Assembly: GCA_950097015.1 (NCBI GenBank)
Contig: CATNEN010000012.1
Location: 434,001 to 498,000 of the forward strand
Reading direction: 5' to 3'
DNA from: Macrostomum hystrix
Lineage: Eukaryota; Animalia; Platyhelminthes
Length of the DNA: 64,000 nucleotides
Position numbers and translations under genes: made by a program. The notes below the pieces were generated by a model that saw only the letters and a program-made list of their open reading frames with translations, was not told where the DNA came from and ran no database searches. Of the stretch, positions 39,701 to 51,778 are shown in pieces; within the stretch, counting starts at the first letter, position 1; each line of letters begins with the position of its first letter.

Positions 39701-40325
39701 GTTACCAGACAGAAGCTGCAGAAGCTGCCGGCCTCCATATCGTCGCTGTAGCTCCGGCTTCGAGCTCAGCAGGCTGTGCTGCAGCCGGCGATAGTGAGCA
39801 TAGGCCCGGACGCTCAGCAGTCGCTTGGCCGACCCCTGGCCAAAACCACGTGGTGGTCCAGCTGGGCCCGAATCTGTTAGCGACTATGAAAAACTCGTTA
39901 GTAAGTAAGTAAAACTCTACTGCTAGTAGCTAGGCTCAAGCGCTATGGAAAAAAAGATATTAAACTGTATAAACATCAGTAGAAAAATATCTTTACATCT
40001 AGTGTCGTAGATGTTTATTTTAAGAAATTTCTTCTAATGAAGTAATTTAAGAATATTTTCTTATGGGCATTTATACAGTTTTTGTTGAAATTAGTTTCAA
40101 CACCAAGAAAATATAACAGCGGTATAACATATAACACAGGCAAATTTAAACAAAAAATGCTTTGCAAATAAACAAAAACACAAATCTTTAAACACATGTG
40201 CTTTCAACATTTGGAAAAATATTTAAGATGTAATTGGCTGGGGCTTCTTAGACTGGAGGGCAAATATATATATATACAAATATAAATAGATAATTAATAA
40301 TAATTGATTAACCTGTCCCAATCAG

Positions 40326-42776: not shown

Positions 42777-45700
42777 ATGTCAAGTTCTGAGCGCGAATAT
42801 CGACTGACTCGGTCGGCATTTGTTCCGCTGTTCTGCTGCCTGCTGCTGTTTCTGTCATTGCCCGCTGAAGCTTTCGGGTGAGTTTCTGTGCGCTTTGAGT
42901 TGGGATGAATTTTGTTGGAGAACTTTGAGCACATTGAGCACATTCACTACAACAACTGGAGAGCAGAAATTGAGGTGGGAAGAACAAGTTAATGCATGAC
43001 GAGACAGCTCAGAGTCATGAGAATGACAAGCAGCTCAGAGTCATGAGAATGACAAGCAGCTCAGAGTCATGAGAATGACAAGCAGCTTAGAGTCATGAGA
43101 ATGACAAGCAGCTCAGAGTCATGAGAATGACAAGCAGCTCAGAGTCATGAGAATGACAAGCAGCTCAGAGTCATGAGAATGACAAGCAGCTCAGAGTCAT
43201 GAGAATGACAAGCAGCTCAGAGTCATGAGAATGACAAGCAGCTCAGAGTCATGAGAATGACAAGCAGCTCAGAGTCATGAGAATGACAAGCAGCTCAGAG
43301 TCATGAGAATGACAAGCAGCTCAGAGTCATGAGAATGACAAGCAGCTCAGAGTCATGAGAATGACAAGCAGCTCAGAGTCATGAGAATGACAAGCAGCTC
43401 AGAGTCATGAGAATGACAAGCAGCTCAGAGTCATGAGAATGACAAGCAGCTCAGAGTCATGAGAATGACAAGCAGCTCAGAGTCATGAGAATGACAAGCA
43501 GCTCAGAGTCATGAGAATGACAAGCAGCTCAGAGTCATGAGAATGACAAGCAGCTCAGAGTCATGAGAATGACAAGCAGCTCAGAGTCATGAGAATGACA
43601 AGCAGCTCAGAGTCATGAGAATGACAAGCAGCTCAGAGTCATGAGAATGACAAGCAGCTCAGAGTCATGAGAATGACAAGCAGCTTAGAGTCATGAGAAT
43701 GACAAGCAGCTCAGAGTCATGAGAATGACAAGCAGCTCAGAGTCATGAGAATGACAAGCAGCTTAGAGTCATGAGAATGACAAGCAGCTCAGAGTCATGA
43801 GAATGACAAGCAGCTCAGAGTCATGAGAATGACAAGCAGCTCAGAGTCATGAGAATGACAAGCAGCTCAGAGTCATGAGAATGACAAGCAGCTTAGAGTC
43901 ATGAGAATGACAAGCAGCTCAGAGTCATGAGAATGACAAGCAGTTCAGAGTCATGAGAATGACAAGCAGCTTAGAGTCATGAGAATGACAAGCAGCTCAG
44001 AGTGACACACTTCATGAAAGTGGCAAACAAGAAGACAATGCAACAAGGAGACAAGGAAAATAAGAGAAATTTGTATTAATATTAAACGATGCATAAAATG
44101 ATAGACTGTGAACCATAATAAGATGGCTCCAAGGTAAAAATATGGTAAATAATGTTGTTAAGCATGCTTGAATTATTTGCATGACATGCCGCAACTTGCT
44201 AATATTTTGCAAGTTTCGCTCCAAGCCTTCGTGCAAGGTGCGGAATGTACAAAGTCTTGTATACCTAATAATAATGGCTGGTAACAAGCATCCAACATGT
44301 GAGGATTTATGAAGTATTATATCCAATTAAAGCGACCGAACAAGTCTCTCGACCAACTGTTGAATGTTTTCACCTGGTTACGTAATGACTCGAATGATAT
44401 CGGTGCAAAGAGATCAAAGCAGGTGTTTAGTGTACACGTTGGTTCTACCGACTATTTTCAGATCAAATTATTCTACGGACAAAGTGAAAGCTAATTTTTC
44501 GAGTCAGAAATTTCATGGAAAAGAAACTTGATGTCTTATGCTATCCTGAGCTCGAATCCGCAGCGAGGGGAGGCCAAATTCGTTTTTTGGTTGGTTTTGG
44601 TTCGTTCGTTGGTTCGTTTTTTTGGCAGGCTTTTTGCCGAAAAATGCACTACGGAGATAGAAAATTAGATCATCGATAAGATCGGAAAATTTAGATTCAG
44701 ATGGTAGACTTTCACGAAAATCAGTGATTTGGTTTTGGAGCTATCGTGAAGTAGTGTTTGAAATAGCCCCAGTGATCTTTACCCAGAGGAAGGATAGCAT
44801 GGTGTCTCTATTGTTAAAGTCGAAAAACTATCTAGTGGGTCTTATATAGAAAGATATCGTAAGCTAGTTAATTTGCGCAGAAAAATTGTCTAAGCTCGAA
44901 AAGGGCATCCACTCCGCATGCAGACGCTTGCAGCCCATGGACTCCGCATCCTTCTACCAGCTGCTCACCCGCCAGCCGGAGGAGCTGTGCTCTGCTGATT
45001 CGCTGGCGTCGGCAGAGATCACTCCGCGAGTCCGCAGCTACTGCAACAAAGCCAGCGTTGCCGAGCGCCTGGTGCACTGGGGACTGGTGAACGGTTACAA
45101 GACCTGCCAGGCTTTGTTCCACAATGAGCGCTGGAACTGCAGCTTCCAGGCTGCGTTCCTGGATACCGGTGAGCTCAGGAAGCTGGCGGATTTAATGACG
45201 GAAGCTGGGGACACACTGAGGGAAGCTGGGGATTCAATGAGGGAAGCTGGGGATTCAATGACGGAAGCTAGGGATTCAATGAGGGAAGCTGGGGATTCAA
45301 TGAGGGAAGCTGGGGATTCAATGAGGGAAGCTGGGGATTCAATGACGGAAGCTGGGGATTCAATGAGGGAAGCTGGGGATTCAATGAGGGAAGCTGGGGA
45401 TTCAATGAGGGAAGCTGGGGATTCAATGAGGGAAGCTGGAAATTCAATGAGGGAAGCTGGGGATTCAATGAGGGAAGCTGGGGATTCAATGAGGGAAGCT
45501 AGGGACACACTTAGGGAAGCTGGGAATTCAATGAAGGAAGCTGGGGACACACTGAGGGAAGCTGGGGACACACTGAGGGAAGCTAGGGACACACTGAGGG
45601 AAGCTGGGGACACACTGAGGGAAGCTGGGGACACACTGAGGGAAGCTGGGGACACACTGAGGGAAGCTGGGGACACACTGAGGGAAGCTGGGGACACACT

Positions 45701-48700
45701 AAAGGGAGGCTGGGGACACACTGAGGGAAGCTGGGGACACACTGAGGGAAGCTACGGACACACTGAGGGAAGCTGGGAATTCAATGAGGGAAGCTGGGGA
45801 TTCAATGAGGGAAGCTGGGGATTCAATGAGGGAAGCTGGGGATTCAATGAGGGAAGCTGGAAATTCAATGAGGGAAGCTGGGGATTCAATGAGGGAAGCT
45901 GGGGATTCAATGAGGGAAGCTGGGGACACACCGAGGGAAGCTGGGGACACACTGAGGGAAGCTTGGAATTCAATGAGGGAAGCTGGGGACATTGAGGGAA
46001 GCTGGGGACACTGAGGGAAGCTGGGGACACACTGAGGGAAGCTAGGGACACACTGAGGGAAGCTGGGGACACACTGAGGGAAGCTGGGGACACACTGAGG
46101 GAAGCTGGGGACACACTGAGCGAAGCTGGGGACACACTGAGGGAAGCTAGGGACACACTGAGGGAAGCTGGGGACACACTGAGGGAAGCTGGGGACACAC
46201 TGAGGGAAGCTAGGGACACACTGAGGGAAGCTAGGGACACACTGAGGGAAGCTGGGGACACACTGAGGGAAGCTGGGGACACACTGAGGGAAGCTGGGGA
46301 CACACTGAGGGAAGCTGGGGACACACTGAGGGAAGCTGGGGACACACTGAGGGAAGCTGGGGACACACTGAGCGAAGCTGGGGACACACTGAGAGAAGCT
46401 GGGGACACACTGAGGGAAGCTGGGGACACACTGAGGGAAGCTGGGGACACACTGGTAGCAGGCGCAAATAGTGCATGGAGAATGAAGGTAAAACCAAAGC
46501 CATGGCGGTGCTGGATACCCTATATTTCCTTCGCGGTCTTGTGGCATTAGCTGTGTCGCCGTTCTTCAAAGATACCGCGTAGCTGAGGTTTGTGAAGTGT
46601 TCGCAACAATTGCTTCGGACCATTTTAAATACGGTAGGAGTAACAGACAGAGTCACCACTGTGACGTAAAAGCATTGTGATTAATGCAGCCATTTTCATT
46701 CAGGAATTCCACAATAGTTCAGTCCTTTTCTATGCAAATTAAACTTAGAAATGCAGTCAGGATGTCAGCAATTCATGCCGCCAAGGGCTGGTCTGACAAA
46801 GACATTAGTTGTTTGATGTTGCACAAGACTTATGAAACTGATGGGGAAATGGAAACTAATTAAAGAAATTCTTTTTTGTAACAGTAAACAGGCTGAGTTA
46901 CAAAAATGAATTACGGAGTGACAGTAGAATTGGTTGTGGAGTGACAGACTAGAATTGGGTGAGGAGTAACAGACTAGAATAGGGTGAGGAGTGACAGAGA
47001 AGAATAGGGTGAGGAGTGACAGAGAAGAATAGGGTGAGGAGTGACAGAGAAGAATAGGGTGAGGAGTGATAGAGTAGAATTGGGTGAGGAGTGACAGACT
47101 AGAATAGGGTGAGGAGTAACAGAGTAGAATAGGGTGAGGAGTGACAGTAGAATTGGGTGAGGAGTGACAGAGAAGAATAGGGTGAGGAGTGACAGAGAAG
47201 AATAGGGTGAGGAGTGATAGAGTAGAATTGGGTGAGGAGTGACAGACTAGAATAGGGTGAGGAGTAACAGAGTAGAATAGGGTGAGGAGTGACAGTAGAA
47301 TTGGGTGAGGAGTGACAGAGTAGATTAGGGTGAGGAGTGATAGAGTAGAATTGGGTGAGGAGTGATAGAGTAGAATAGGGTGAGGAGTGACAGAGAAGAA
47401 TAGGGTGAGGAGTGACAGAGAAGAATAGGGTGAGGAGTGATAGAGTAGAATTGGGTGAGGAGTGACAGACTAGAATAGGGTGAGGAGTAACAGAGTAGAA
47501 TAGGGTGAGGAGTGACAGTAGAATTGGGTGAGGAGTGACAGAGAAGAATAGGGTGAGGAGTGACAGAGAAGAATAGGGTGAGGAGTGATAGAGTAGAATT
47601 GGGTGAGGAGTGACAGACTAGAATAGGGTGAGGAGTAACAGAGTAGAATAGGGTGAGGAGTGACAGTAGAATTGGGTGAGGAGTGACAGAGTAGATTAGG
47701 GTGAGGAGTGATAGAGTAGAATTGGGTGAGGAGTGATAGAGTAGAATTGGGTGAGGAGTGATAGAGTAGAATTGGGTGGGGAGTGATAGAGTAGAATAGG
47801 GTGAGGAGTGATAGAGTAGAATTGGGTGGGGAGTGATAGAGTAGAATAGGGTGAGGAGTGATAGAGTAGAATTGGGTGGGGAGTGATAGAATAGAATAGG
47901 GTGAGGAGTGACAGAATAGATTAGGGTGAGGAGTGACAGACTAGAATTGGGTGAGGAGTGACAGACTAGAATTGGGTGAGGAGTGATAGAGTAGAATTGG
48001 GTGAGGAGTGATAGAGTAGAATTGGGTGAGGAGTGATAGAGTAGAATTGGGTGAGGAGTGATAGAGTAGAATTGGGTGGGGAGTGATAGAGTAGAATAGG
48101 GTGAGGAGTGATAGAGTAGAATTGGGGGGTGACAGACTAGAATTGGGTGAGGAGTGATAGAGTAGAATTGGGTGAGGAGTGATAGAGTAGAATTGGGTGA
48201 GGAGTGATCGAGTAGAATTGGGTGAGGAGTGATAGAGTAGAATTGGGTGAGGAGTGATAGAGTAGAATTGGGTGAGGAGTGATAGAGTAGAATTGGGTGG
48301 GGAGTGATAGAGTAGAATAGGGTGAGGAGTGACAGACTAGAATTGGGTGAGGAGTGATAGAGTAGAATTGGGTGAGGAGTGACAGACTAGAATAGGGTGA
48401 GGAGTGACAGAGAAGAATAGGGTGACGAGTGACAGAGTAGATTAGGGTGAGGAGTGACAGACTAGAATAGGGTGAGGAGTGACAGACTATAATAGGGTGC
48501 GGAGTGACAGACTATAATAGGGTGCGGAGTGACAGTATTTCTCAAGCTCAGCTGCAGCATCCAGTGTCATTTACATGCGAACCACCCAAGGCTATCCGCA
48601 GGCCGGTTTTGTGTGGGCGATGGCGGCGGCCAAGGCGGTGGAGGAGCTCGCGCTGGCCTGCAGGCGGGGCGAGCCCGGACTCAGCTGTCCGTGCCACGTG

Positions 48701-51231
48701 GACTCGGCTCCCATGGTGCTGTCAGCTCCCGAGGACCCGCTGCCCACAGGTGTGTCGGCCGAGCCATTTCACTTTGAGCAGTGTTGCTTACCCACTCAGA
48801 CAAAATGTATTCTTAATCTTGAAAAGAGATGTTCCAGATCCCATTTTCATGTGCACAACCGCAGATACTATTCTAATGAGCGAGCCAATATCCCATTCCT
48901 ATATGAGATATCCCAGATCCCATTCTTAGAGAGATATTCCAGATCCCATTCTTATATGAGATATCCCAGATCCTATTCTGATATGAGATATCCCAGATCC
49001 TATTCTGATATGAGATATCCCAGATCCTATTCTTATATGAGATATCCCAGATCCCATTCTTATATGAGATATCCCAGACCCCATTCTTATATGAGATATC
49101 CCAGATCCCATTCTCATATGTGATATCCCAGATCCCATTCTTAGAGAGATTTTCCAGATCCCATTCTGATATGCGATGTCCCAAAAAGCATTCTTCGCAC
49201 ACACTCTGATCCACAGATGGTCCGCTGAGAAGCCGTCGCAGCGCTTTCGATCCTGCTCAACTGTCCTCATCATCAGCCAGTTTCTCAACCGAGCAGAGAC
49301 AGCAGTTGAGATCCATCAGCCCAGAGTCGATCAGCCAGAAGTACGGCAGCCTGGCGCTGCCATCCTGCGACGACAACCTGCGGCTGGCAAGCCGGCGGGT
49401 TCGCCAGTTCTTCGCCGACACCCGGGCGGGCCTGCGAGCCGCTGGGCAGCCGCCGCAGCTGCCGCTGCTGGTCAACCTGCACAACCTGCGAGCTGGCCAA
49501 ATTGTGAGTCAGGGAGCTCAGCATGATGAGCTGCCGATTAGATCTGGGATCAACGGCTCAGGCCCACGAGATTAACAGCAATTATCCAAAGAAATTACCA
49601 TCAGATACCAAGAATTATATAACCAGATAGATTAGCCAACCAAGACGACCAACAATCACCTATCGCAATATCTGCGCAAACCTGACCGGATTACCAGCAA
49701 TCCCAGTCAATGGTATTAGCATCCCATCAGTCAGTGAGATTAGCATCCCATCAGGCAGTGAGATTAGCATCCCATCAGTCAGTGAGATTAGCATCCCATC
49801 AGGCAGTGAGATTAGCATCCCATCAGTCAGTGAGATTAGCATCCCATCAGGCAGTGAGATTAGCATCCCATCAGTCAGTGAGATTAGCATCCCATCAGGC
49901 AGTGAGATTAGCATCCCATCAGTCAGTGAGATTAGCATCCCATCAGTCAGTGAGATTAGCATCCCATCAGGCAGTGAGATTAGCATCCCATCAGGCAGTG
50001 AGATTAGCATCCCATCAGTCAGTGAGATTAGCATCCCATCAGGCAGTGAGATTAGCATCCCATCAGGCAGTGAGATTAGCATCCCATCAGGCAGTGAGAT
50101 TAGCATCCCATCAGGCAGTGAGATTAGCATCCCATCAGTCAGTGAGATTAGCATCCCATCAGGCAGTGAGATTAGCATCCCATCAGGCAGTGAGATTAGC
50201 ATCCCATCAGTCAGTGAGATTAGCATCCCATCAGGCAGTGAGATTAGCATCCCATCAGTCAGTGAGATTAGCATCCCATCAGGCAGTGAGATTAGCATCC
50301 CATCAGCCAGTGAGATTAGCATCCCATCAGTCAGTGAGATTAGCATCCCATCAGGCAGTGAGATTAGCATCCCATCAGTCAGTGAGATTAGCATCCCATC
50401 AGGCAGTGAGATTAGCATCCCATCAGGCAGTGAGATTAGCATCCCATCAGCCAGTGAGATTAGCATCCCATCAGTCAGTGAGATTAGCATCCCATCAGGC
50501 AGTGAGATTAGCATCCCATCAGGCAGTGAGATTAGCATCCCATCAGCCAGTGAGATTAGCATCCCATCAGGCAGTGAGATTAGCATCCCATCAGGCAGTG
50601 AGATTAGCATCCCATCAGGCAGCGAGACTATACCAACCGTCTGAATCCGCAGGCGGCCCGCCGCAGTCAGGTGAAAATTTGCCACTGCCTGGGCGTGTCC
50701 GGCTCGTGCGCCAAACGGGTGTGCATCAAGGGCATGCGGCGTCTGTCCGGAAAGCTGGAGGCCAACATTCGCCAGCTGTTCCTGGATAGTCGCCTGGTTC
50801 AGCTGGCAGCCCCAAAGCATCGTCGGCGTCAGAGAGAGCGGCAGCGACGTCGCCAGGGGCAGAGAAGGCCCAGCGGAGCCGGGTCAAACAATCTGATTCT
50901 CGCCGACGATGGCAGCGACGGCAACAGCGGACGGAAGCGACGTCGTCGGGCGCCAAAAAAGAACATGGTGCACTGGAGACGCGCGCCGGACTTTTGCGAC
51001 GCCGACACGGACGAAGGTCGTTACGGAGTGCAGAACCGGGTCTGTAACGCCACCAGCGCGGCTGCTGACCAGGCCGACTCGTGCGCCAGGCTGTGCTGCG
51101 GCCGCTACAACTTCGCTGCCCAATACGTCACGAGGCGGGAATGGTGCCGCTGCCAGCTTTTGTCCAATCCAATCAGGGTTGACTGTCAGCTGTGCGAGAA
51201 TCGGCTGCTCACGCATCGGTGTCGCGTATAA
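42777..51231 (+). CDS. Divergent Wnt ligand; exons 42777-42877 (signal peptide, linkage uncertain), 44881-45168, 48591-48749, 49217-49503, 50653-51231
   Basis: CQALFHNERWNCS; AGFVWAMAAA...ACRRGE...CPC; SCDDN; LVNLHNLRAG; CHCLGVSGSC; APDFC; RVCN.TS; C.RLCCGR. Phases of the last four exons are consistent (1,1,0); subfamily not assignable by eye. Confidence 0.9.
43000..44003. repeat. 26-bp minisatellite GAATGACAAGCAGCTCAGAGTCATGA in Wnt intron 1
   Basis: About 38 near-identical copies. Confidence 0.97.
44538..44840. mobile_element. Possible Helentron-associated (HINE/DINE-1-like) element
   Basis: Inverted 10-mers ATGCTATCCT (44538) / AGGATAGCAT (44791) enclosing a GGTT/CGTT microsatellite; 3' hairpin not clearly preserved. 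Confidence 0.35.
45190..46452. repeat. 21-bp minisatellite GAGGGAAGCTGGGGA(CACACT/TTCAAT) in Wnt intron 2
   Basis: Two variants arranged in blocks. Confidence 0.96.
46910..48535. repeat. ~25-bp minisatellite GGGTGAGGAGTGACAGAGTAGAATA in Wnt intron 2
   Basis: About 65 copies. Confidence 0.96.
48835..49170. repeat. 27-bp repeat ATATCCCAGATCCCATTCTTATATGAG in Wnt intron 3
   Basis: About 10 degenerate copies. Confidence 0.9.
49718..50625. repeat. 24-bp minisatellite ATTAGCATCCCATCAG(T/G)CAGTGAG in Wnt intron 4
   Basis: About 38 copies. Confidence 0.97.
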
Positions 51232-51494
51232 GCCGAGGCTCCTGTGAAACTCTGAGACTGTTTGAGCTCTCTTAAACTGCAATGCTTCATCTCTTTAAAA
51301 AGGAAAACTCGAAAAAACGGGGACCAAAGTCGGAGTCCGATAATCGCTTTGAGAAGCTGGCAGTTCCTCATGAACTTTGTAAAAATTGTCGCATCACACG
51401 GCCGAGTAATACGCCAGTGCTTGTACATTTCAGTGCTGATTCTTGAAGAGTACTTGATGATAGTGATGATTTATTCGAGTACTTTTGTGCTCGA

Positions 51495-51778
51495 TCACTT
51501 GAGTGCTTGAGTACTTTAGTGCTTGAGTACTTTAGTGCTTGAGTACTTGAGTGCTTGAGTACTAGAGTACTAAGCGCTTCAGTACTAAGCGCTTGAGTAC
51601 CAAGCGCTTGAGTGCTTGAGTGATTGAGTGCTTTTTAGTGTTAGAGTGATAGAGTACTTTAGTGCTTGAGTACTTTTGTGCTTGAGTACTTGAGTGCTTC
51701 AGTACTTGAGTGCTTGAGTACTTGAGTGCTTGAGTACTTTAGTGCTTGAGTACTTTAGTGCTTGAGTACTTTAGTGAC
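51495..51778. repeat. ~15-bp repeat GTGCTTGAGTACTTTA
   Basis: Degenerate tandem copies downstream of Wnt. Confidence 0.85.

Follow-up and report, generated by a model that had tools for sequence, protein, structure and literature searches.

Canonical Wnts of solved structure, such as XWnt8 with the Fz8 cysteine-rich domain (CRD; 4F0A), WNT3 (6AHY), WNT3A with WLS (7DRT) and WNT7A (8TZO), share a two-domain fold, a Ser-Gly pair on the thumb and an index-finger hairpin stapled by disulfides. At the tip of this finger they carry a Trp and a tandem Cys-Cys, which belong to the second Frizzled contact, site 2 (XWnt8, PMC6040091). The two tip cysteines are disulfide partners of each other, and the Trp and the tandem disulfide have been regarded as universal in Frizzled recognition. 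Here, we analyzed a stretch of 64,000 nucleotides from the flatworm Macrostomum hystrix (contig CATNEN010000012.1, positions 434,001 to 498,000 of the forward strand; hereafter the window, numbered from its first letter) and describe a five-exon Wnt gene on its plus strand in which this tip is replaced by a different, conserved turn. The encoded protein has a predicted two-domain fold, the thumb Ser-Gly, 11 of the 12 cysteine pairs, the disulfide-stapled finger hairpin and a CN.TS sequon in common with the solved canonical Wnts. Unlike them, it has no site-2 Trp and no tandem Cys-Cys, its W-loop is replaced by an insert, and its WNT motif is broken at two positions.

Other atypical Wnts have been described. 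Drosophila WntD is, like the window protein, a lineage-specific atypical Wnt, and its N-terminal domain (NTD; 4KRR) was among our fold matches. WntD is not lipid-modified and is independent of Evi/Wls (PMC10112924), whereas the acylation Ser-Gly and the hairpin disulfides are retained in the window protein. Closer to our species, a preprint reported that M. cliftonense and M. hystrix have multiple Macrostomum-only Wnt copies, named WntM, that belong to none of the bilaterian families (Gasiorowski, Tripathi, Bavafaye Haghighi & Rink, bioRxiv 10.64898/2026.07.29.741434). It makes no mention of cysteines, index finger or acylation. In planarians, RNA interference (RNAi) of wnt11-2 produced animals that were tailless and had lost posterior markers, that of wnt11-1 produced short tails (PMC4661829), and wnt11-2 has been treated as an element of the canonical pathway with Fzd4-1 as its proposed receptor (PMC7830089). 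In the searchable literature, no statement turned up that the finger cysteines are missing from WntM or flatworm Wnt11 proteins.

Remodelled motifs on a Wnt framework

The comparison with other Wnts draws on the following features of the gene:

49217..49503, plus strand: exon 4, with a Ser/Arg-rich insert (49228-49350), LALPSC in the place of WxWGGC (49351-49368) and NLHNLRAGQ (49474-49500)
50653..51231, plus strand: exon 5, with the thumb hairpin CHCLGVSGSCAKRVCI (50680-50727), the Arg-rich linker, the C-terminal domain (CTD) with the index finger, and the stop codon TAA (51229-31)
50698..50700, plus strand: Ser at the palmitoleoylation position (Wnt3a Ser209) with the conserved Gly, assigned by alignment and putatively acylated
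50818..50949, plus strand: Arg-rich linker between NTD and CTD, with the dibasic motifs RQRR, RKRR and RRRR (HRRRQRERQRRRQGQRR at 50818-50868, RKRRRR at 50932-50949)
51145..51195, plus strand: index-finger hairpin CRCQLLSNPIRVDCQLC, with the tip turn SNPI (51163-51174) in place of W-C-C

The exons were searched one at a time, and the M. lignano orthologue P0001, introduced below, served as a proxy for whole-protein analyses. Exon 5, a single open frame of 192 codons, matched the Pfam wnt family (PF00110) at 79.1 bits (gathering cut-off 20.3; E = 5.6e-22) over profile positions 157-305, in agreement with the preliminary description of this locus, which had recognized a Wnt at 50653-51231. A HMMER search of PDB also matched this exon to the solved structures of Wnt3a, Wnt3, Wnt7a and Wnt5a. 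Aligned with CRCQLLSNPIRVDCQLC, the Wnt3a finger CRCVFHWCCYVSCQEC shows that the Trp and both tip cysteines are gone and that the loop is one residue longer in the window protein. The canonical pattern CxCxFxWCCxVxC thereby becomes CRCQLLSNPIRVDC, with SNP(I) standing where the WCC of Frizzled site 2 is found in other Wnts, and the counterpart of Wnt3a V337 is still a Val. The replacement of the hairpin had been noticed from the outset, with a start at 51142 that is in fact the preceding Trp codon. This WCC tip is near-universal in Wnts and not strictly defining for the family, since it is also absent from the flatworm Wnt11 clade, from Sycon WntM and from an ostracod Wnt.

Other near-invariant motifs are altered as well. 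CKCHG became CHCLG, TCW became VCI and WGGC became LPSC; the first two changes and the basic linker stretches had been described correctly. The Ser-rich insert of approximately 45 residues and the LPSC that follows it are also real, but they are located in exon 4 (49228-49368) and not within 50653-51231, where they had been placed. The window sequence C-H-C-L-G-V-S-G-S-C does not match the WNT motif of PROSITE type given in PMC12371475, C-[KR]-C-H-G-[LIVMT]-S-G-x-C; it fails at positions 2 and 4, with the Ser, the Gly and all three Cys retained. Single substitutions in this motif reduce function and do not abolish it (PMC12371475). The Ser at the acylation position, whose retention was already reported, falls in a column (S16) that is invariant in an alignment of 54 Wnt sequences, with G14 and G17 nearby, and the protein is putatively acylated there.

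The cysteine framework is largely intact. The mature protein contains 22 cysteines, compared with 22-24 invariantly spaced ones in the Wnt framework, and C10, C12, C19, C24, C115, C131, C144, C148, C149, C165, C167, C178, C181 and C190 are invariant in the 54 Wnts, including the window protein. Within the exon 5 region, every cysteine column is invariant among these sequences with the exception of the tip pair, and the finger Val is nearly invariant. The two lost tip cysteines are partners, and their joint loss therefore leaves the window protein without an unpaired cysteine.

Structure prediction is consistent with these alignments. AlphaFold2 modelled exon 5, with its alignment, at a mean predicted local distance difference test (pLDDT) score of 82.5. 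The two finger strands (154-170 and 175-190) reached 95-98 and flank the turn S171-N172-P173-I174, and the linker scored 56-71. The eight top Foldseek hits of this model were all Wnts (Wnt7a, Wnt3, Wnt3a, Wnt8a, XWnt8), each with a probability of 1.00. The full-length model of P0001 had a predicted template modelling (TM) score of 0.75 and TM scores of 0.65-0.74 to Wnt structures; its Ser/Arg-rich insert (residues 158-197) had a pLDDT below 50 and its linker approximately 60. In these models, the core, the thumb and the finger of the two-domain Wnt fold (saposin-like NTD with thumb, cytokine-like CTD finger) are kept, while the Ser/Arg-rich insert and the linker are probably disordered.

The basic segments could alternatively be processing sites. 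Proprotein convertases would then cut the linker (RxKR/RRRR) and the insert (RSRR), so that the NTD and the CTD would come apart or be joined more loosely, giving a two-chain or processed Wnt. The presence of RQRR, RKRR and RRRR in the linker and of RSRR in the insert, the low pLDDT and probable exposure of both segments, and the Arg-rich linkers of P0001 and its paralogue P0151 are in line with such cleavage. However, these are motif matches alone, their positions differ between the orthologues, and this GC-rich coding DNA often encodes Arg-rich low-complexity sequence. The linkers of P0001, P0151 and the window protein share their basic character and not their sequence. We consider a processed Wnt very unlikely, and it would be compatible with the explanation that we favor below rather than exclusive of it.

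With so many near-invariant Wnt residues altered, the gene might also be a decaying or neutrally evolving pseudogene, and the preliminary description had asked whether it is transcribed and selected. We compared positions 50600-51476 with RNA-type contigs, which give neither expression level, strand nor tissue; five runs from two studies were found, and four of them (X1 to X4) were used for the comparison. Contigs of all four matched at 99-100% identity within 50653-51463. Those of X2, X3 and X4 jointly cover exon 5 and the untranslated region (UTR) behind it, and X1 contributed one piece of 247 nt (50837-51083). No RNA-type contig was placed on the part of intron 4 that lies within 50600-51476. 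One contig of 470 nt aligned with 50653-50760, and the 30 letters that precede this match are the end of exon 4 (49474-49503). The contig joins 49503 to 50653; therefore, the gene is transcribed and spliced exactly at 50653. Nei-Gojobori counts, obtained per exon against the M. lignano coding sequence and summed, gave a ratio of nonsynonymous to synonymous substitution rates (dN/dS) of 0.23 overall and 0.21 for exon 5, an approximate ratio since dS is near saturation (about 1.3). The gene is under purifying selection and is not decaying. Its very long branch could still be read as a sign of decay, and so could its 64% identity to the orthologue, compared with mostly 62-93% for the tblastn segments of the glutamine synthetase next to it. 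Set against them are the intact frame across five exons with GT-AG introns, the dN/dS value, the 22 framework cysteines, all kept, the spliced transcript with contigs in several runs, and the two paralogue groups retained by M. lignano, such that a pseudogene is hardly credible. An alternative exon that would restore WCC had also been proposed as something to look for. In all six frames of the window, neither another Wnt-like exon nor a canonical C.C..WCC..C..C hairpin was found.

Macrostomum relatives and the flatworm Wnt11 clade

A HMMER search of 1.84 billion cluster representatives returned 343 Wnts. In that database, only two relatives had an E-value below 1e-13 (P0001 and P0002), and both are from M. 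lignano. P0001 corresponds to BOX15_Mlig029070g1 ('Protein Wnt'), a protein of 444 aa that is 60-64% identical to the window gene and with which all five window exons are colinear. P0002 is 43% identical, and its cluster contains M. lignano Mlig015547g1 (P0151) and Mlig003032g1 (P0152). The M. lignano records label these relatives only as 'hypothetical protein' or 'Protein Wnt'. The gene order AAA-ATPase, Wnt, glutamine synthetase is common to the window and to M. lignano contig L001. As the same neighbours occur at the P0001 locus, the window gene is the positional orthologue of Mlig029070. The glutamine synthetase gene lies downstream of the Wnt at about 59943 to 56087 on the minus strand (its main tblastn segments are 79-93% identical to the M. 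lignano neighbour gene), and the AAA-ATPase match at about 39746-39841 is 82% identical over 33 aa to the gene upstream of the M. lignano Wnt orthologue.

The M. lignano proteins P0001 and P0151/P0152 share the whole set of changes with the window gene, namely C[HN]CLG[VI]SGSC, C-I for TCW, [LI]P[ST]C for WGGC, the Ser/Arg-rich insert, the Arg-rich linker and the finger CxCxxxxNPIRVxCxxC. The tip NPIRV is identical in all of them despite overall identities of 36-60% (36-43% for P0151/P0152 against the window gene), whereas the insert and linker sequences differ between the M. lignano proteins and the window gene. Like WntM, this clade is restricted to Macrostomum and, in the careful tree below, is not nested in any labelled Wnt family. 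This fast-evolving clade is most likely the WntM of the 2026 preprint, an identification made from the clade description given there. The gene is thus probably a divergent orthologue of a flatworm Wnt that was already annotated, and one of the WntM genes named in 2026.

The preliminary description had implied that such a finger is unique, which did not hold. Among the 150 best matches, 30 were without the canonical hairpin; most of these were truncated fragments, and about nine had a complete, rebuilt finger. The named proteins among the latter are flatworm Wnts, one sponge Wnt and one ostracod Wnt. A search with the protein of Dendrocoelum recovered Smed-Wnt11-2, Smed-wnt11-1 and many neodermatan Wnt11 proteins, giving a planarian, trematode and cestode Wnt11 set (P0163, P0164, P0028, P0165-P0175, P0045). 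WCC was absent in every member of this clade whose C-terminus was available, for example CGCFIDDKFKIQCDDC and CNCRMANGFKVQCDEC; like the window protein, Smed-wnt11-1, Smed-wnt11-2 and the proteins of Dendrocoelum, Schistosoma, Fasciola and Echinococcus are without the tip W-C-C. They also read VCF or VCY for TCW, comparable to VCI in the window protein, and their WxWGGC is degenerate (LLFAGC, FYHSSC, FYWAGC), with large inserts at the same spot in the neodermatan members. The trematode tip N-G-F-K-V resembles the Macrostomum tip N-P-I-R-V. Unlike the Macrostomum clade, flatworm Wnt11 proteins have kept CKCHG and CCGRG. Outside flatworms, the tandem Cys-Cys is independently missing from the finger tip of SciWntM of Sycon ciliatum (P0142) and of a Wnt of the ostracod Notodromas monacha (P0148).

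A Wnt phylogeny had been suggested as a check, and we built a careful IQ-TREE tree of 58 rows from which the finger-tip columns were removed and Sycon WntM was left out. The window gene and three M. lignano proteins formed a clade (100/100 support; stem length, 3.49 changes per site) that belonged to none of the labelled Wnt2, 4, 7, 10, 11 and 16 groups. Flatworm Wnt11 was nested in Wnt11, also with 100/100 support. Uniting the Macrostomum clade with flatworm Wnt11 was not rejected on the same tip-free columns (approximately unbiased test, p = 0.30; log-likelihood difference -7.2). In an earlier and larger quick-tree data set with long branches, the united tree was better than the free-search quick tree by 56 log-likelihood units. 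The phylogeny thus established a Macrostomum-only clade and neither supported nor rejected its link to flatworm Wnt11, leaving it as either an orphan WntM or a runaway offshoot of flatworm Wnt11. A grouping with sponge Sycon WntM, obtained in the quick tree, was rejected as long branches meeting.

Proposed receptor engagement by a finger without WCC

The explanation that we favor, with a probability of roughly 0.6, is that the gene encodes a secreted, acylated ligand which docks through its lipid on a Frizzled CRD and carries a rebuilt, selected site 2 fitted to flatworm receptors. The ligand would be secreted and acylated by PORCN, and its lipid would engage the Frizzled CRD at site 1. The remodelled site 2, with the Asn-Pro turn of SNPIRV, would fit co-evolved flatworm receptors, while the W-loop would have given way to a disordered Ser/Arg-rich insert ending in LPSC and the linker would be polybasic. 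The protein would act as a signal, like the WCC-less planarian Wnt11-1 and Wnt11-2, and not as a decoy. The suggestion of an altered receptor specificity made in the preliminary description fits what the sequence indicates: the site-2 Trp and Cys-Cys are gone, NPIRV is conserved, and the gene is expressed and under purifying selection.

Mutants of mouse Wnt3a bear on this explanation. F331A, W333A and C335A lost reporter activity and kept most of their activity in zebrafish embryos, while S209A and bulky substitutions of V337 did not keep it (PMC4068752). The window protein keeps the Ser, Gly and Val that match the S209 context and V337. Moreover, hairpin 3, or the index finger, has been reported as more important for Frizzled binding than for secretion (PMC10112924), and for this reason export should not suffer. 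In planarians, RNAi of wnt11-1 and wnt11-2, whose products have no WCC, leads to posterior loss of the kind typical for positive Wnt signals; therefore, a WCC-less finger is compatible with a positive signal.

Several points weigh against a signaling ligand of this kind. W333A nearly abolishes the binding of Wnt3a to the Fz8 CRD in vitro (PMC4068752), so by analogy canonical site-2 binding has very probably been lost. Acylation by PORCN is assumed for a protein whose WNT motif reads C-H-C-L-G and is broken at two positions. The careful tree sets the Macrostomum clade apart from Wnt11, and the planarian analogy may rest on convergence; in addition, flatworm Wnt11 has retained CKCHG, and the Macrostomum clade is the more derived of the two. 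RNA support is limited to the exon 4/5 junction and exon 5.

The loss of the site-2 Trp and tandem Cys-Cys could instead point to an antagonist or decoy. A lipidated protein would fill the lipid groove of Frizzled and, lacking a working site 2 and co-receptor surfaces, compete with true Wnts. The W333A pull-down result is what such a protein would predict, inserts of low confidence that are probably disordered stand in the place of the W-loop and the linker, and V337R, which is competent for binding and dead for signaling, could compete for receptor engagement (PMC4068752). However, the NPIRV tip, the finger Val and the other finger disulfides are conserved at 36-60% identity, which would be unexpected for an irrelevant finger. 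Furthermore, planarian Wnt11-1 and Wnt11-2 are positive posterior signals without WCC, and the site-2 alanine mutants of Wnt3a still signaled in vivo (PMC4068752). The lipid-only natural antagonist advanced in the preliminary description is thus left unsupported, and we regard an antagonist as unlikely.

A tip that is conserved yet non-canonical could also serve a receptor other than Frizzled (the WIF domain of Ryk/Derailed, Ror or PTK7) or a dependence on heparan sulfate, with the remodelled finger and the polybasic linker as the binding surface. All three clade members have an Arg-rich linker, and the same finger loss occurs in the flatworm Wnt11 clade, which falls within the Wnt11 family. 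In vertebrates, Wnt11 is a largely non-canonical ligand. Against this, the lipid-bearing thumb, which is the main contact with the Frizzled CRD, has been kept, and planarian wnt11-2 is genetically tied to Fzd4-1 and the canonical pathway (PMC7830089). Reliance on such a receptor seems quite unlikely to us.

A broader proposal is that flatworms, in both Wnt11 and the Macrostomum clade, swapped the site-2 Trp/Cys-Cys contact for an N-x-hydrophobic-basic-V tip, and that Macrostomum remodelled the W-loop and the WNT motif too. We hold this as doubtful. If true, it would represent a mode of Wnt-receptor docking absent from the solved complexes, the partner being either another receptor or a Frizzled CRD pocket that has co-evolved, and the product of the Macrostomum clade might not be a classical agonist but a lipid-anchored modulator.

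A whole flatworm branch is without the finger residues deemed universal. Its WCC-less Wnts are expressed and selected, the planarian ones have clear RNAi phenotypes, and the Macrostomum clade is the most extreme, with a new conserved tip. They constitute a natural experiment on the extent to which signaling needs site 2 and on Wnt-Frizzled co-evolution, and M. lignano is amenable to transgenics and RNAi, so a direct test is possible. As a single-gene result this is modest, while the loss of WCC across flatworm Wnt11-type ligands may merit specialist attention.

Gene model and repeats

The remaining features of the locus are:

42777..42877, plus strand: exon 1, with the ATG and a signal-peptide-like hydrophobic core AFVPLFCCLLLFLSLPAEA (42816-42872)
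44924..45168, plus strand: exon 2, with an N-terminal Cys pair and CQALFHNERWNC (45105-45140), which holds an NCS glycosylation sequon
48591..48749, plus strand: exon 3, with YPQAGFVWAMAAAKAVEELALACRRGEPGLSCPC, a helical core, and PQAGF where RE.AF is usual
51232..51463, plus strand: 3' UTR, at least as far as the RNA-type contigs extend
42996-44003, 45196-46454, 46915-48535, 48890-49183, 49715-50627 and 51477-51776: minisatellites

Read exon by exon, the gene has GT-AG introns and a reading frame that is intact throughout. The hydrophobic core of exon 1, a putative secretion signal read from the sequence, is followed by AEA. The exon ends at a GG|GTGAGT donor in phase 2 and is colinear with exon 1 of P0001. 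The frame between exons 1 and 2 fits only with the acceptor 44923|44924. Exon 2, which is 60% identical to P0001 and matches Pfam wnt at 25.9 bits (E = 8.9e-06, profile positions 4-47), ends at a CCG|GTGAGC donor in phase 1. For exon 3, the acceptor 48590|48591 continues the frame of exon 2, and it is fixed at 48591 because the resulting junction FLDT-G-YPQAGFVW matches FLNTGYPQAGFVW of P0001. An alternative acceptor at 48601|48602 was out of frame with the exon 2 donor and was rejected. Exon 3 is 85% identical to P0001, with a dN/dS of 0.06. Exon 4 gave a weak Pfam wnt match (profile positions 103-150). At the 3' end, the contigs of X2, X3 and X4 stop at 51448-51463, just ahead of a 16-bp repeat array that begins at 51477, and neither AATAAA nor ATTAAA was found as a polyadenylation hexamer in 51232-51520.

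A minisatellite occurs in each Wnt intron and just beyond the 3' UTR, with units of 16-27 bp repeated as many as 65 times. At 45196-46454, the 21-bp array is open in the Wnt frame and positioned behind the exon 2 donor. A read-through of exon 2 into this array, which would add REAGDSM units, was rejected in favor of the GTGAGC donor at 45169. Intron 3 (48750-49216) is 467 nt long, has GT..AG ends and holds 11 copies of a 27-bp unit. P0001 is unlike the window gene in this respect: its exons 3 and 4 are fused into one exon without a counterpart of intron 3 (L001 15777-16178). At the sequence level, this difference points to the gain or loss of an intron within the variable Ser-rich insert.

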